64,000 nucleotides of DNA from Salpingoeca rosetta. Taxonomy: Eukaryota > Protista > Choanoflagellata. The notes below the pieces were generated by a model. The model was not told where the DNA came from, made no database searches, and saw only the letters and a list, made by a program, of their open reading frames with translations. Of the stretch, positions 3,101-9,100 are shown in pieces. The DNA is taken from positions 1,144,060 through 1,208,059 of the forward strand of contig JAWQFM010000015.1 in NCBI GenBank assembly GCA_033442325.1, given 5' to 3'. Position numbers and translations under genes: made by a program. The first letter of the stretch is position 1. Each line of letters starts with the position of its first letter.

Positions 3101-6100
3101 TGTGCGAGACACAGCTCACTCCCGAACAAACCAACCAGCGAACAAGCGAACATGCAAACGAACAAATGACTTCACTTATCATATCTGCACACTCACAAAC
3201 ACACTCACAAACACACACTCACACACAAACACACTCTCTCGTTCTCACTGATGACCACGTGCGCGCTGATGACGGCTGCAGCTATCGAATCGAGCACGGG
3301 GAGCTGGCGTGGCTGCTGGCGGAGGACGTGCCGCAGGAACACCGGAAAAAAGAGCGCTCGTTTCGGGCGGAGCTGCGAAAGGCGCGACTGCTTGAGCTCG
3401 CCTTGACATGGGACAGGATCGACGTGGCAAGGTTTGTTGTGGTGGGATGTGGTGGGCTGTGGTGGCGTTGATGTTGGAGAGGCACGGCTCATTGTTGTTT
3501 ATTGTGCTCATTCGTTGCTGTGACATGACGGTTCTGACCAGACAAGAGACTGCCAAGTACCGCGTGCTGAAGGACTTTGACGACAAAATCGCATCAGATC
3601 CAATCACACAGTATGACGCCAGCACTGTTTTTTTCCTGATGGGCCTGGACGTACATGTATCCGTTCATGGGGTCTTGCGTCCATGTGGGTGTGCGTGCGT
3701 GCTGTTCACGCCTGCTTCGTGCCGAGAGAGAGAGAGAGAGAGAGAGAGAGAGAGAGAGAGAGAGAGAGTGTGTGTGTGTGTGTGTGTGTGTGTGTGTGTG
3801 TGTGTGTGTGTGTGTGTGTGTGTGTGTGTGTGTGCGAGAGTTTTCCTCACGCCACTACTCGTCGTCGTCATTGGCTATCCAGGGCAAAGGCACGCATGCT
3901 CAAGTGGGCGCTGGTCAACAATCGCCAGGCGTTTGTGCAGGTGAGCTGCAACGTTGATTTCGGCATATCCATTCAATATCACGCACGGAACGCTGACATG
4001 CTTCGCGCGCACACTCACACGCGCGATCTTCGTTTGCTTGTTTGCTTGTTCGTTCGTGTGTTCGTTTGTTTGTTCGTTGGTTTTTTCGTTTGTTTGTTTG
4101 TGCTCTCACTCTGACGCGATCACTAACGCTCACTCGTGTCACCTCCTCACACAAACACACACACGCATATTTTGGTGCAGATTTTCCTCGAGACGATGGA
4201 CACGCAGGACGTGACGGCGTTTCTGCGCACCCCGACAACATCAGGCCTCACCCTGCCCTCTCTCCGCAAGATCTCGCACTCCCGCTCAAAGTACAGCGGC
4301 ATGCCATTGTCTGAGCAGCGGCTCACACACGTGGTGTTGTGGCTTTGGCATAGCGCAGTCATAGCCCGTGCGCATCGCTGCACTAAGCAGCAACGACCAG
4401 TGCTCAACAGTGTTTTCTCACACTAACCTGCGTTGCGTGCATGTACATATATGTGTGTGTGTGTCTTTCAGGACGCGTGCGAAAGGACGGGCAAGGCAAA
4501 TGGTGCGTCACCGGAACACTTGTTTTCACAAACGCTGCGCGCATAACTTCACAAACACAACACGTGTGCAGTCTGTTCAACGTTTCGCATGTTCACACAC
4601 GCACACACACTTGCCTCGCTCCTTTTCTCTTGATGCTGTCAGATCAAGTGGAGCAACTTGAAGCACCGGTTCTCCGTCCCACTGCCACCGACGCTCAACA
4701 CCGACCCGCTGCCGGCCCACTGCCACTCCCTGCTCGCGGTCAGTTGCTGGTTAGCGTGTGCAGCGTGTGCAGCGTGCACACACACACACACACACACACA
4801 CACACACACACAAGTTCGTGCCCTGCTCTCATTGCCAGTATATGCCAACGCTCCTGCCTGTACGCCTGCCTCCTCCTTCAGGACATTGCTGCAACGAAGA
4901 TGTACTGTGACCTGAAGGAGCTGTTCCAGTCGCGCCTGACGATCACCCAGCGCGAGATGCGGCAATACGACTTCAACATCGACTTTGACCACGACGACGT
5001 TGCCGACATTCGCAAGCGCGAGGAACTCATCATCGAGGTGACGATGGCGGTGTGGGTGTTATTGTTTGCATTGGCTGACGTTTGCGTGAAAAAGGACTAT
5101 CATTTTTCGCACACGCTTGCAAACACGCACATATGAAAACACACACACACGCACACACACACACACACACACACACACACACACACACACACACACACAC
5201 CCTCTCTCACTCTCACTCACTCACTCAGTCATCTCACTCACACACACGCTCTCTGTCTCACTGAATGCACATGCCCTGATGTTCAAGGCGAACAAACGGT
5301 TCACGATGGCCAACGGGGCCAATGCATGGCACATGCTCTCGTACTTTGACGTCTTCTTCGTCCGATTCCTGGTGATGCCACATTCCTGGCATTTGTCTTC
5401 TGTCTCACACGTGATGGGCTGCGCTGGCACAATGCAACATATCACCATTGTCTACCTATCCTCACGTCCCATCCAACCACTTGTACCACCACCACTGCCA
5501 CGATTCATGTCACTCCCGCCAGTTTGCGCAAGGATTTATGGTGTCACGCATCCCTGTGTCGTCTTCTGGCCCGCCACCACGCCACGCGGAGGCCATCGAA
5601 GGGCTCACGCGCGCCATCCACCTCATCTGGGTCCATCGCATGGTTGGTGCACACACCCCGCTCAGTTCCCTGCGGTTGTCTCTGCCGGATTGCGCATCTG
5701 GCCGTGTCTGAGTCTTGTTTCTCATGGATTGTGTGCTCGTGGATTGTGTGTGTGTGTGTGTGTTTGTGTCTGTCTGTCTCTGTCTCTGTCTCTGTCTCTG
5801 TCTCTGTCTCTCCCTTTCTCCCCCTCTCCCCCCCCTCTCTCCCCCTCCCCCCCCACACTAACACCCACTCTATCTGTCTCTCTCTGTCTCCATCCCCCAA
5901 TCACTTCTTTCCTGTCATACCGCTCACGCCATCAACGCGCGATTGCTGCACAGCTCGACGACGGCTGGTCCTATGGAAAGGCGCTGGACGAAGAGATGCA
6001 GGAGTCACCGCTCATCTGCGCTTATGACAATCAGAACGACGGCAGCGCGTTCCTCAACGAAGACATCAAACACGACATGCGCGCACACGGTCCGTTATCC

Positions 6101-9100
6101 TCATCGTCTCTTTGCTTGAGATGGAACTGACACGCGCAGCTGCGCGCACGTTTGTGCTCACCGCACGTCCTGAGCCTGCACACATACACATACGCGCGTA
6201 CACGTGAGCATGCACACGTCCACATACCCATGCACAAGTACATGTGCACATTTACATTTGCGCATGTGCACACATTCCCTCACTTTGCGGCCCTGTCGTC
6301 CATACTTTCGCTTATCCGTGTACTCCTTCCGTTCTTCACTCGGCTGCAGCTGCGCGGTTTATGGAGACGCTGTATTCGTCCATGCGCATCGTCATCTGGC
6401 AGCCGAACACGCTGGAGAGTCTCTTCATCCACCCAACACTCACCCGCACCCCACGGCACAACGCAAAGTACACCCACCTCGTCAGCCTCTTCCCGGTGGG
6501 TCGTGTGTGTGTGCGTGTGCGTGGGTGTGTGTGTGTGCGTGCGTGTGTGTTTGTGTGTGTGTGTGTGTGCGTGTGTGTGTGTGTGTGTGTGTGTGTGTGT
6601 GTGTGTGTGTGTGTGTGTGTGTGTGTGTGTGTGTGTGTCTGTGTGCTCTTGCATTTTTTCTACGTCTGTGTCTTTCTTCAGGTGCTGCATGTCGTGGGTA
6701 ATTCTGCTTCCTTGCGCTCGTGCTCACTGTCACATTGTTGTTGGATTGCCTCCTTTCTCTCACACTTAGGGTGGCTCGTTCTGGGAGAGCCAAATTCGTC
6801 ATGTGGTGAGCCAGTGCCCTCGCTCGCCTTGCTCTTGCTGCATATCTGCTCATTCAACAATTTGTAACTGTTCATGTGCGAGTACGAAGCTGTGTTGACC
6901 TGCTTTTCCTTGTCACGTGTTCACCACGTGCTATCGCCCTTCCTGCTGCTGTTCAGCTGGCTGAGGCGGTGCACTCGGATGCAGAATACGTCTACTTGTT
7001 TGAACTGGACCCATTTTTCCTCTTGGCTGTACGTCCATATGATTGGTGTTTCTCGCTCCCTTGCTCTCGTCCATGCCCGTGTCAACACACTCGTGCACTC
7101 GCTGGATACCACACTCACACGACCAGTGACACGCGCACACACGCGCACACGCACACACGCACGTGGACGATGGCGCGTCACTCACGTTGGTCTTGCTGCT
7201 GCTACCTGTGGTTGTGTCAGGTGTGGGCAGCAGTGACCAACTTTCCAAGGCTCACGAAATACTTTTGGCACCTCAGTCCGCAGTACGTATCGCACCACGC
7301 AGTCCCGCCTGTATTTTTCATGAGTTTGTAGCACCTGCGCGCCCTCACACAACATGCGTGTACGTGTGTGTGTGTGTGCGTGTGTGTGTGTGTGTGCGTG
7401 TGTGTGTGTGCGTGTGTGCGTGTGTGTGTGTGTGTGTGTGTGTGTGTGTGTGTGTGTGTGTGTGTGTGTGTGTGTGAAGGTCGGCGATTCCAAATGGGCT
7501 GGTGTTGACGCTGGTGGTGAAGGCTGCCCTCGAACACGACGAGAAACTGCCGGTAGGAATTGCACACCTGTTCCTTCTGCTGATCGCACCAGCCCAACCA
7601 CACCCGATTGCCACACTTACATGCGTGCGTGCGTGCGTGTGTGTGACTCCTGCTTGTTCTCCCCTCCCCCATTTTCTTCTCTTTGTTGTTCCCTGTTGTT
7701 TGTTGTTGGACTCACCCCCTCCCGTTCCGCACGCCCTGGGCTACCCGTTCAACAATGCGTGCGGTGCGTGTCGGGTTTCCATCAGCCGGAGAGCATTGTT
7801 GTGTTTGAAGGTCTCGCAAACGACATCATGGAGGAGTGCGTCGATATTCTCAACCACATTGACCAGCGCAACTCGAGTACGTGTGTCTTTGGAATTGTGC
7901 AAGTCTTGGCCGCTCTGACTTAGCTGAATGGTCCATGTCACATGAATGGAACTTGCAGCACACAACGCGCACACTACTCGTATTTGCATTCGCATACATG
8001 TACGCGGCTGCGTATTAACAGAACGCATGTGCACACACATACGAATGCCGCTCACTCTCCTCCCCCCCCCCCACACACACACGCCCATGTCGCCACACCA
8101 GAGCTTGCTGAGCGCATCCTGCGGAGTCGACCCGTGAATGGCGGGATGGTGCAGACCACCACGCTCGCATACCGCATTGGATATGAGGCATTTGTCGCCA
8201 CAGACGCATTCCTGCGTGTCCTCAACTACCTCTGGGTGAGCTCAACACAGCTGTGGATCGGGAAAGGGGATGAGGGACGGAAGAGGAAAGAGGTTTCGGC
8301 CTGCGACTAACTAACTTTTCGTTTCGACACATGTTGCATGTTGTGTTTTGATGCAACGTGTTTGTGTTGTAACATCAAAATGTGCAGCCTTTTGTCTTCC
8401 TGTGCCGTTCATCGCTTGCATGCTCACATATGTGTGTTTGTTCCGCCCATTTTTCTCACGTGTGCTGTGGCTTTGTGACAACTTCCAGTACGACAACGTG
8501 GATCCAACCAACGGTCTCATCAAGATTTTCATCGCTGCACTCTTCCCGTTCTACCTCGTCATTCCCGGAGAGCAGCTCAAGTAAGAGGAGGGGAGAATGT
8601 GTGTTTGCATGTGTGTGAGGGGGAGAGGGGAGAAGCTTGCACAGGGGAGAAGCTTGCACGCACACACACACACACACACACACACACACACACACACACA
8701 CACACACACACACACGCACGCACGCACGCACGCACGCGCGCGCACACACACACACATCTGCATGGTGCTCACCTCAGTCTTGCTTGCCACTGATGCGTAA
8801 TGCTAGGGAATCACACGGCCACGCGCATCTCGGGTTCTGGGAGACGCTGAAGCGAACGCTTCCCGTCCGCATCGACACATCCGTCGCCATCGACTCGAGT
8901 GAGCTGTTGCGCCTTGATGTGCACGCGTGCATCCAGGCATACGGAACACACACACACACACACACAAACACATACCATCACGCATTCCAACTTGTACTGG
9001 ACTTTGCTGCATTCTGTGTGCAAGTGGTGCGTGCTAACTGACATGCCGCACATGTGTGGCTGTTTTTGGAATTTCAGACAGCGATGGCGTTATTGACGAA

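Follow-up and report, generated by a model that had tools for sequence, protein, structure and literature searches.

A RyR repeat nested in the N-terminal region of a choanoflagellate TRPM channel subfamily

The window analysed here is a 64,000-nucleotide stretch of the Salpingoeca rosetta genome (contig JAWQFM010000015.1). It contains the TRPM gene PTSG_06043 (P0001), which is annotated as encoding a hypothetical protein and specifies 1,435 amino acids. The protein maps exactly and colinearly to positions 126-12914 of the forward strand in 39 coding blocks; all features described below are on this strand. The stop codon (TGA) is at 12912-12914. Residues 1-39 are unplaced: residues 1 to ~30 are encoded 5' of the window, and residues ~31-39 fall in the first window bases (AIHVPP at 3-20), which are too few for a six-residue seed. 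The assignment to TRPM, originally made from the DNA, is upheld. There is a SLOG/MHR1-2 domain (residues 78-349, 400-2773; PF18139, E 1.2e-69), a six-TM TRP pore in the transmembrane channel domain (residues 1067-1305, 9678-11610; Ion_trans, PF00520, E 4.9e-17) and a TRP helix; PF25508 is partial in the Pfam scan. P0001 matches nvTRPM2, hsTRPM2, TRPM7 and srTRPM2 in the PDB at ~1e-51, and is placed within TRPM in the tree. The pore is TRPM-type, with PKD_channel reaching only E 0.098, and the Pfam scan of P0001 contains no RIH, SPRY or RyR/IP3R-type channel families. A choanoflagellate TRP channel survey (2026) entered the gene as an ordinary TRPM.

A well-conserved RyR repeat (residues ~655-737, 5580-6399), split by two introns, lies N-terminal to the pore. 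The original prediction placed a RyR-signature peptide here on two frame-consistent exons. The peptide is present, but three exons are used (5523-5642, 5954-6089 and 6350-6495). They are joined in the mRNA across GT..AG introns in three stranded RNA-seq runs, with 9-25 junction reads per run from many start sites, at exactly the proposed junctions 5642/5954 and 6089/6350. A single transcript contig of 4,781 nt is colinear across all exons. RNA depth is 12-63 in the RyR exons, equal to that of the flanking TRPM exons, and 0 in the introns; exon-skipping joints at or above the listing threshold are absent from the three runs. The suspicion that the exons might be absent from mRNA is thus removed. 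The supposed atypical GAG acceptor at 5591 was mistaken: the actual acceptor is a canonical CAG at 5520-5522, 23 codons upstream.

The first of these exons (5523-5642, residues 636-675) encodes a linker and RyR helix 1, the latter including an 18-residue motif; its joints (5371/5523 and 5642/5954) are found in the three RNA runs and the contig, and it ends at a GT donor. The second (5954-6089, residues 676-720 plus 1 nt), bounded by RNA joints, encodes the LDDGWSYG...ESP...AYD loop, after which helix 2 begins. Alone it reaches E 0.13 against PF02026. All 41 of the PDB matches of this 45-aa exon are RyR or RyR-domain proteins, so at the sequence level its resemblance to RyR domains is far beyond chance. 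The third (6350-6495, residues 721-769; joint 6089/6350) encodes RyR helix 2 with its 10-residue motif, the strand RIVI and a clade-specific 10-residue linker (6397-6426) in which I/W/P/L/E/L are (nearly) invariant. It is spliced directly onto 6770, where the next exon (6770-6805, a 12-residue segment; loose-end consensus of three runs and the contig) returns to the MHR3/4 region. The spliced product of the RyR region is identical to residues 477-781 of P0001. Both flanking motifs are present, one of 11 residues followed by IFLE (residues 466-480) and one of 15 residues (806-820).

Residues 655-701 match PF02026 at 26.7 bits (E 6.7e-6, query 630-780), and at 22.3 bits in the whole protein. The HMM comparison suggested with the prediction therefore gives a significant match but stays 0.7 bits below the Pfam gathering cutoff for RyR (27.4 bits), an operational threshold rather than a biological feature. 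Only profile positions 16-62 are aligned, because of the seven-residue loop NQNDGSA (6029-6049); this loop is lineage-specific, being common only to S. rosetta, Microstomoeca and Barroeca. The orthologous inserts exceed the cutoff in seven of ten relatives (33.4-50.3 bits, coverage ~16-90 of 91). The domain escaped notice in S. rosetta, the one species that has a reference genome, because of this sub-threshold score. When residues 400-900 are compared with the PDB, the sole match at E<=1e-5 is an RyR chimera (1.5e-8). A profile built from 12 clade sequences matches 60 PDB chains, all RyR-type (RyRs and bacterial RyR-domain proteins), and matches RyR2 at E 7.6e-34 (per repeat 8.7e-11, 2.6e-7 and 2.7e-5). 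An AlphaFold (AF2) model of residues 625-775, built with the clade MSA, has a pLDDT of 78 overall and 87-97 in the core. Helices are predicted at model positions 33-53 and 87-108 and a strand at 110-113 (pLDDT ~90 for the strand and helix 2). The Foldseek top 50 for this predicted structure are all RyR R12, R34 or bacterial RyR domains; the first 45 have a probability of 1.0, and none falls below 0.99. VIA-align gives Z 9.1 for bacterial 3NRT, the best structural match (rmsd 2.8 A, 82/93 residues), 8.7 for 6uhs and 7.4 for 4erv; the next match is at 4.8. By HMM, clade profile and predicted fold, the TRPM segment is a true RyR-repeat homologue, as originally proposed.

The RyR module as a whole spans ~190 residues (~556-745) and is nested in the MHR3/4 region. 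In ordinary TRPM2s, Pfam treats MHR3/4 as a single uninterrupted domain (PF25508), and it is unbroken in P0013 and P0031. The matches in P0001, P0007 and P0009 closely follow the RyR domain and take in only profile positions from 130-144 onward; in P0001 the match is at residues 785-869. Upstream of the well-kept repeat is a weak candidate for a degenerate first RyR repeat (residues 556-645, 4882-5552), encoded by exons 4882-5037 and 5288-5371 and the start of 5523-5642, and ending in a helix and a GF-M-V-S strand. Weak support comes from the model, whose residues 1-20 align with the final part of the preceding repeat in 6uhs. The upstream segment of the Didymoeca orthologue weakly matches PF02026 positions 51-91 (E 0.033), and the sole match of the acanthoecid upstream profile is RyR2 Repeat34, also weak (E~0.1). 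In hhalign, the upstream segment matches repeat 2 at E 0.004 with a probability of 8%. The first-repeat Trp is lost in Craspedida. The segment looks like a decayed first repeat, which makes a Repeat12-like tandem the probable ancestor of the module.

Independent transcriptomes show the same architecture in nine further named species, and three environmental sequences have it too. The search for SLOG+RyR+TRP proteins in choanoflagellates that the prediction called for thus yields 13 RyR-bearing TRPMs, from both Craspedida and Acanthoecida. They are monophyletic with support of 1.0 (FastTree, 997 columns, RyR insert removed) and split into Craspedida and Acanthoecida sub-clades. The sister clade consists of choanoflagellate NUDIX-bearing TRPM2-likes. 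Of the 108 TRPMs listed from outside the clade, almost all from animals, not one carries PF02026, in agreement with the expectation that characterised animal TRPMs lack the repeat. A single fusion event predates the last common ancestor of living choanoflagellates, and its product was vertically inherited in both orders. RyR-bearing TRPMs are an ancient, conserved choanoflagellate subfamily, not a one-off chimera. Insert identity across the clade is only 21-56%.

The host channel resembles the TRPM2 chanzymes (srTRPM2, 8SR7; nvTRPM2, 6CO7) in SLOG/MHR1-2, S1-S6 and the TRP helix, and in its ligand-site residues. Mapped via the nvTRPM2 alignment and PMC7201885, the N-terminal ADPR-site positions T143, T179, Y264, R271, T307 and R329 of nvTRPM2 correspond to T, T, F, R, T and K in the clade. 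The columns of the Ca2+-site residues (E1112, Q1115, N1130 and D1133) are invariant in the clade alignment. As judged from aligned residues, the clade keeps the TRPM2 N-terminal ADPR pocket and the transmembrane Ca2+ site. SLOG-site residues are partly kept also in TRPMs without ADPR gating. Unlike the chanzymes, PTSG_06043 ends in a C-terminal tail of 147 aa without a NUDT9H/NUDIX domain, and has the RyR module instead. Pfam finds no PF00293 or PF25969 match in P0001-P0012, and the post-S6 tail is only 140-177 aa long in the 11 clade members in which the S6 motif was located.

Nucleotide binding has been described for several RyR-type domains. RyR1 W882 stacks ADP/ATP, making RY12 an ADP sensor (PMC13642953), and RyR3 W880 likewise stacks an adenine nucleotide (PMC12627627). 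The R12 nucleotide cleft of RyRs requires both repeats, and RY12 of RyR1 is also the dantrolene site (2025-2026 work). Phage PF02026 proteins bind or cleave 2'/3'cADPR via H75, W78, H100 and D117; among the RyDEP homologues six of eight bind, and one of nine tested phage proteins is catalytic (bioRxiv 10.64898/2026.05.28.727677). The residue roles used here are taken from these three papers. In PTSG_06043 the H-x-x-W motif is H668-L-I-W671 (5619-5630), equivalent to RyDEP H75/W78 and to the adenine-stacking W882 of RyR1. The adenine-stacking position is W in all 13 clade members and the His of the motif is present in 12. A basic residue occurs at W+3 in 11/13 and at W+4 mainly in acanthoecids; conservation of the basic residues at W+4 and W+15 is incomplete, above all in the S. 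rosetta group. The phosphate-binding His position, W+22 (RyR1 H904, RyDEP H100), is Ser or Asp in the clade. The position of the acid of DyoEdafos RyDEP (D117), assigned by canonical spacing only (17 residues after x-P, the 'DR' site of many RyR domains), is M, N or C, never D.

Among known systems, RyR Repeat12 (RY1&2) has the same fold and signature: an H-x-x-W helix, a GW-x-YG loop, x-P...Y/F, a second helix and a short strand. Repeat 1 is the clade profile's best among the four repeats of RyR2 (i-E 8.7e-11), and Foldseek aligns 135-150 columns of R12 to the model. Both have the adenine-stacking Trp, and both are cytosolic modules of tetrameric cation channels. They differ in that the TRPM host is a 6-TM channel and not an RyR/IP3R-type release channel, and in that the TRPM module has a putative ligand site, a degenerate first repeat and a Ser in place of the phosphate His, and is nested in MHR3/4. 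The phage RyR-domain proteins are the top viral matches and have the H-x-x-W ligand residues in common with the TRPM module; members of the RyDEP family bind nucleotides derived from ADPR, and the ligands of TRPM2 channels are of this class. Bacterial and phage RyR proteins (B. thetaiotaomicron 3NRT/6UAG, RyDEP and 'sponge' homologues) are small soluble homodimers with an anti-defence use, whereas the TRPM module is covalently embedded in a eukaryotic channel and, judged by spacing, has no equivalent of the catalytic Asp. Eukaryotic RyR domains were stated to occur only in RyRs, PKDRR and oomycete CaMKs (Zheng & Mackrill 2016, PMC4820453). Oomycete PKDRR, a PKD/TRPP pore with tandem RyR domains, is the sole fusion of RyR domains with a TRP-superfamily channel described earlier, and is likewise lineage-restricted and conserved. 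It differs in being TRPP rather than TRPM, in carrying the tandem near the C-terminus and not within the N-terminal MHR region, and in belonging to another eukaryotic supergroup; it is certainly an independent fusion. No mention of a TRPM-RyR fusion was found in the literature searched.

The best explanation, which we put slightly above an even chance, is a TRPM2-like channel whose RyR module may act as a regulatory adenine-nucleotide sensor (for ATP/ADP, ADPR or a cADPR isomer). The nucleotide would stack on the invariant W671, as in RyR1 RY12 and phage RyDEP. The module would close or reorient on binding, and its movement would pass through the rigidly conserved W-x-P-D/N-x-L-E-x-L-Y/F linker to MHR3/4. 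Gating would thereby be tuned, with ADPR at the SLOG site and Ca2+ as the main drive. Of the roles first suggested for the module (a regulatory or ligand site, or a pairing module), that of a putative ligand site has gained ground through the 2025-2026 papers in which RyR repeats bind adenine/ADPR-type nucleotides. The case for a sensor function draws on homology and residue conservation; the H, W and GW residues define the family, and a purely structural role would conserve them equally. The replaced phosphate His, the partly kept basic residues and the degenerate first repeat speak against a sensor.

The module could instead be a ligand-free structural or protein-protein interaction domain which braces neighbouring subunits of the tetramer or docks a partner, a role long attributed to the repeats of RyRs; this is a real possibility, on the unlikely side. 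RyR domains have been summarised as interaction sites, both intra- and inter-molecular (Zheng & Mackrill 2016, PMC4820453), and bacterial and phage RyR domains form dimers (3NRT, 6UAG, RyDEP). The loss of the phosphate His and the decay of the first repeat also fit this role, as does the fact that the top-conserved clade-specific motif is the linker W-x-P-D-x-L-E-x-L-Y and not a pocket residue. However, the solvent-facing H-x-x-W ligand residues are kept in 12-13 of 13 members despite an insert identity of 21-56%, and all RyR-type domains biochemically examined since 2020 bind adenine nucleotides. It is improbable that the module is a glycosidase of the RyDEP type with cADPR isomers as substrates, which would stand in functionally for the NUDT9H hydrolase and make the channel a chanzyme of a new kind. 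RyDEP is an example of catalysis by this fold, 12/13 members have the base His equivalent to RyDEP H75, and the clade lacks the NUDT9H that its sister TRPM2-likes have; the spacing-based reading of the acid position, never D, and the single catalytic protein among nine phage proteins tested weigh against it. The module most likely binds a ligand rather than acting as an enzyme. A chance motif, a mis-assembled or mis-annotated chimeric model or a retained intron has a negligible probability. Single exons score poorly, and the S. rosetta domain aligns to part of the profile under the gathering score, but the junctions and continuous transcript contig, the orthologues and the profile and fold matches (E 7.6e-34, Z 9.1) contradict such an artefact. 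The splicing data, orthologue PF02026 scores, clade profile and fold match refute it.

The finding documents domain turnover in TRPM evolution: of two sister clades in choanoflagellates, one has NUDT9H and the other a RyR repeat. It places a RyR repeat, hard-wired into a channel that has the ADPR-site residues of TRPM2, in the closest living relatives of animals. The channel is a tractable system (~1,400 aa against 5,000 aa for a RyR, in a genetically manipulable organism) in which to study the signals that RyR repeats sense and the coupling of their movement to a pore. A narrower form of the sensor explanation, which we regard as tentative and rather doubtful, is that the module, as a second sensor, responds to NAD-derived nucleotides (ADPR or a cADPR isomer) and has succeeded the missing NUDT9H as a regulator. 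If true, the clade would be a natural 'Rosetta-stone' fusion, and RyR repeats would already have been ADPR-type receptors in the unicellular ancestors of animals.

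The window is eukaryotic in character, with short exons and introns rich in (CA)n/(GT)n. The TRPM gene PTSG_06043 lies on the + strand from 126 to a stop codon at 12912-12914; its product, P0001, maps exactly to 39 coding blocks. Residues 1-39 fall outside these blocks: most would be encoded 5' of the window, and the last few by the window's first bases. P0001 is recorded at NCBI as 'hypothetical protein PTSG_06043 [Salpingoeca rosetta]' (1,435 aa) and in UniRef as 'TRPM SLOG domain-containing protein'. A 31-nt micro-exon of the gene (4472-4502), easily overlooked in ORF tracks, has RNA-seq support and is part of P0001. 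The (CA)n/(GT)n arrays of its introns are numerous and reach 143 bp; long perfect trinucleotide arrays of the GTT/AAC type, with about 40-50 copies, also lie within introns, at 2905-3030 and 11170-11330. Further along the window, the G+C content drops to 0.376 at 30001-32000, compared with 0.52-0.64 elsewhere.

Pfam domains in P0001 are SLOG/LSDAT_euk (residues 78-349, E 1.2e-69), a partial PF25508 domain, which models the TRPM2 MHR3/4 region (residues 785-869), and Ion_trans (residues 1067-1305). PDB matches of the SLOG region include nvTRPM2, hsTRPM2, TRPM7 and the TRPM2 chanzyme of S. rosetta, all at approximately 1e-51. P0001 belongs to a clade of 13 choanoflagellate TRPMs which carry a ryanodine receptor (RyR) repeat. 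The six N-terminal ADPR contacts of nvTRPM2 (T143, T179, Y264, R271, T307 and R329; PMC7201885) align clade-wide with T, T, F, R, T and K, and the TRPM Ca2+-site residues E1112, Q1115, N1130 and D1133 are invariant in the clade alignment. No NUDIX or NUDT9H match is found in the Pfam lists of any member, and the tail behind S6 is only 140-177 residues long. Judged by its sequence, the channel core of P0001 is thus of the TRPM2 type without NUDT9H.

Splicing of the RyR-encoding region was examined by aligning three runs of stranded RNA-seq and a Logan contig set, all from the same organism, to positions 4110-6499. Five GT..AG introns are supported on the + strand: 4739-4881, 5038-5287, 5372-5522, 5643-5953 and 6090-6349. 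Each is spanned by 4-43 junction reads per run with many different start sites, and one 4,781-nt transcript contig is colinear with all exons. Depth is zero in the introns and equal in the RyR exons and their neighbours; no exon-skipping joints are listed in the runs or the contig set for this region. Read orientation is consistent with + strand RNA. The nine RNA-supported exons maintain an open frame throughout and encode a 305-residue product identical to P0001 residues 477-781. The junctions 5642/5954 and 6089/6350 of the original prediction are therefore borne out, but the atypical GAG acceptor that it placed at 5591 is not used; the exon starts at 5523 behind a normal CAG. Exon 6350-6495 is joined to exon 6770-6805, as the loose read ends after 6496 carry the sequence found at 6770. 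This direct 6495|6770 junction rules out a candidate mini-exon at 6683-6698, and candidate exon boundaries at 5283-5372 were replaced by 5288-5371 on the basis of the RNA-seq.

Two irregularities were seen in the reads. A C>T change at 5013 occurs in 4 of 39 reads, in run X22 only; it is synonymous (third codon position, CGC to CGT, Arg) and is likely to be a strain polymorphism or an error. A joint from 4167 to 4587, with 26 foreign letters between the matching segments (4150-4167 and 4587-4610), is carried by opposite-orientation reads and by a contig at a depth of about 4,750 (the TRPM transcript has 545). It matches over only about 18-24 nt in CA-rich sequence; an abundant RNA from elsewhere has probably been matched here spuriously, through low complexity.

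Since the domain is split by introns, single exons score poorly against Pfam: the 45-aa middle exon alone reaches E 0.13 against PF02026, the RyR repeat family, and the other exons have no match. All 41 PDB matches of the middle exon are nevertheless ryanodine receptors or bacterial 'putative ryanodine receptor' proteins, with alignments centred on GW-x-YG...P...Y. In spliced P0001, PF02026 matches residues 655-701 (profile positions 16-62 of 91) at 22.3 bits. When the segment is excised and scanned by itself, the score is 26.7 bits (E 6.7e-6), still 0.7 bits under the gathering cutoff, and for this reason no database annotates an RyR domain in P0001. PF02026 is the best or sole family in each of the ten relatives' inserts scanned, seven of which pass the cutoff at 33-50 bits with nearly full profile coverage. 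P0001, Microstomoeca and Barroeca have in common an extra 7-residue loop, NQNDGSA, which breaks their HMM alignment. When the PDB is searched with a profile of the 12 inserts, all 60 chains matched are of the RyR type; RyR2 is matched at E 7.6e-34 (i-E 8.7e-11, 2.6e-7 and 2.7e-5 for Repeats 1, 2 and 3) and the bacterial domains 3NRT and 6UAG at about 1e-12. Structure prediction agrees with the RyR fold. An AlphaFold model built with the 12-sequence clade alignment has a pLDDT of 78 overall and 87-97 in the core; a single-sequence model (pLDDT 35) was discarded. The best 50 Foldseek matches of the predicted structure in the PDB are all RyR Repeat12, Repeat34 or bacterial RyR domains. A second, independent aligner gives Z 9.1 for 3NRT (rmsd 2.8 A, 82/93 residues), 8.7 for 6uhs and 7.4 for 4erv, the next match being at 4.8. 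Homology of the insert to the RyR repeat is established, and the presence of such a repeat within a TRPM protein can be stated with very high confidence.

The conserved repeat spans P0001 residues ~655-737. Helix 1 carries H668-x-x-W671; it is followed by a loop with D-D-G-W680-S-Y-G and S693-P694, then by helix 2 and a strand, R-I-V-I. C-terminal to the repeat is a nearly invariant, clade-specific linker, W-x-P-D/N-x-L-E-x-L-Y/F. Upstream, a helix and a 'G-Y/F-x-V/I-S/T' strand correspond in the structural alignment (6uhs 79..213) to the end of the preceding repeat in Repeat12; Foldseek RyR alignments of the model span 135-150 columns and include this piece. The Didymoeca upstream piece matches PF02026 positions 51-91 (E 0.033). 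In acanthoecid-type members, about 100 residues upstream resemble a decayed full repeat; their profile matches only RyR2 Repeat34 in the PDB (E~0.1; of three weak pieces, two are colinear with one repeat) and aligns with repeat 2 at an hhalign E of 0.004 with a probability of only 8%. These matches are suggestive of a degenerate first repeat of a Repeat12-like tandem. If present, it would start at 4882, which is also where the original prediction began. PF25508 is contiguous in Mobula TRPM2 and in P0013, a comparison TRPM; the RyR-bearing proteins match it only from profile positions 130-144 onwards, directly behind the RyR domain. By these profile matches, the RyR module is nested in a region that Pfam models as contiguous PF25508.

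A full-length P0001 search finds eleven close relatives, all with the insert at the same site; TRPM2-type outgroups have no insert there. The relatives with the repeat come from Craspedida (Microstomoeca roanoka, Barroeca monosierra, Hartaetosiga balthica, Salpingoeca infusionum and Choanoeca perplexa), Acanthoecida (Didymoeca costata, Stephanoeca diplocostata, Acanthoeca spectabilis and an Acanthoeca-like species) and three environmental sequences. Representative searches with the 45-aa exon and word-based searches with residues 560-800 return only P0001 itself, and a region search that used an insert close to the consensus, limited by word sharing, returns only acanthoecid-type members. PF02026 is present in none of the 108 non-clade TRPMs, nearly all animal, among the matches listed in a word-sharing-limited search, in line with the expectation that characterised animal TRPMs lack the repeat. 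In a FastTree phylogeny (LG+gamma, 34 TRPMs, 997 columns, insert region removed; SH-like supports rather than bootstrap), all 13 RyR-bearing proteins form one clade (1.0) which divides into Craspedida and Acanthoecida (0.999 and 1.0). Its sister is a group of choanoflagellate NUDIX-bearing TRPM2-likes (0.90). The tree therefore points to one gain before the choanoflagellate crown followed by vertical descent, and a recent transfer is made less likely by the presence of several introns in the domain. Single-domain scores are similar for animal, insect and bacterial RyR domains (45-59 bits), so they discriminate neither for a choanoflagellate's own RyR nor for a bacterial or phage donor. Monosiga brevicollis, despite its public proteome, has no protein among the RyR-bearing relatives listed; the gene may have been lost, its model may be broken, or word-based searching may have missed it. 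The acanthoecid-type proteins are 150-450 residues longer than their Craspedida orthologues. Three of them, P0007-P0009 (Didymoeca, Stephanoeca and one Logan sequence), have PF13290 matches, with PF13287 also in P0008 and P0009; these matches are absent from the other listed TRPMs.

The closest known kinds are RyR Repeat12, free-standing bacterial and phage RyR-domain proteins, oomycete PKDRR channels and TRPM2 chanzymes. PKDRR is the only other fusion of a TRP-superfamily channel with an RyR domain, but differs in pore family and domain position (PMC4820453). No literature linking an RyR domain to TRPM or choanoflagellate TRP channels was found, in a search with thin coverage of subscription journals; a 2026 choanoflagellate TRP survey treats PTSG_06043 as an ordinary TRPM, and RyR is absent from its text and supplements. 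Within the literature covered, the domain architecture of the RyR-bearing TRPM subfamily is undescribed.

Recent work has altered the view of what RyR repeats do, since related domains bind adenine nucleotides. In Repeat12 of RyR3 and RyR1, ATP or ADP stacks on the H-x-x-W Trp (W880/881/882), the phosphates are held by basic residues and H904, and closure of the domain is clamshell-like; RY12 acts as an ADP sensor (PMC12627627, PMC13642953). W882A abolishes ATP/ADP-dependent dantrolene inhibition, which the authors read as loss of nucleotide binding (PMC12627627, PMC13642953). The phage protein RyDEP, which belongs to PF02026, uses an H75/D117 dyad to cleave 2'/3'cADPR to ADPR, with W78 stacking on adenine and H100 contacting the phosphates; of eight homologues, six bind 2'/3'cADPR without cleavage, two characterised ones with nanomolar affinity (bioRxiv 10.64898/2026.05.28.727677).

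Within the clade, the H-x-x-W Trp and the GW Trp are present in all 13 proteins, the His in 12 and a basic residue at W+3 in 11, while the W+22 His position is Ser or Asp. That the whole feature is an artefact has a negligible chance, given its RNA-seq-supported exons and matches to RyR-type structures. An enzymatic role is improbable: although the dyad His is widely retained, the catalytic-Asp position is M, N or C, as mapped by canonical spacing because tblastn did not find the DyoEdafos RyDEP sequence. A ligand-free structural or docking domain is a more serious alternative, though still an unlikely one; the substituted W+22 position speaks for it, and the conserved H-x-x-W residues speak against it. 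The leading reading, tentatively held and with close to an even chance, is that the module may be a non-catalytic sensor of an adenine nucleotide or ADPR-type ligand which modulates the channel. The ligand would bind without being cleaved, and movement of the module would pass via the conserved linker into MHR3/4, which would then modulate a putatively ADPR/Ca2+-gated pore.
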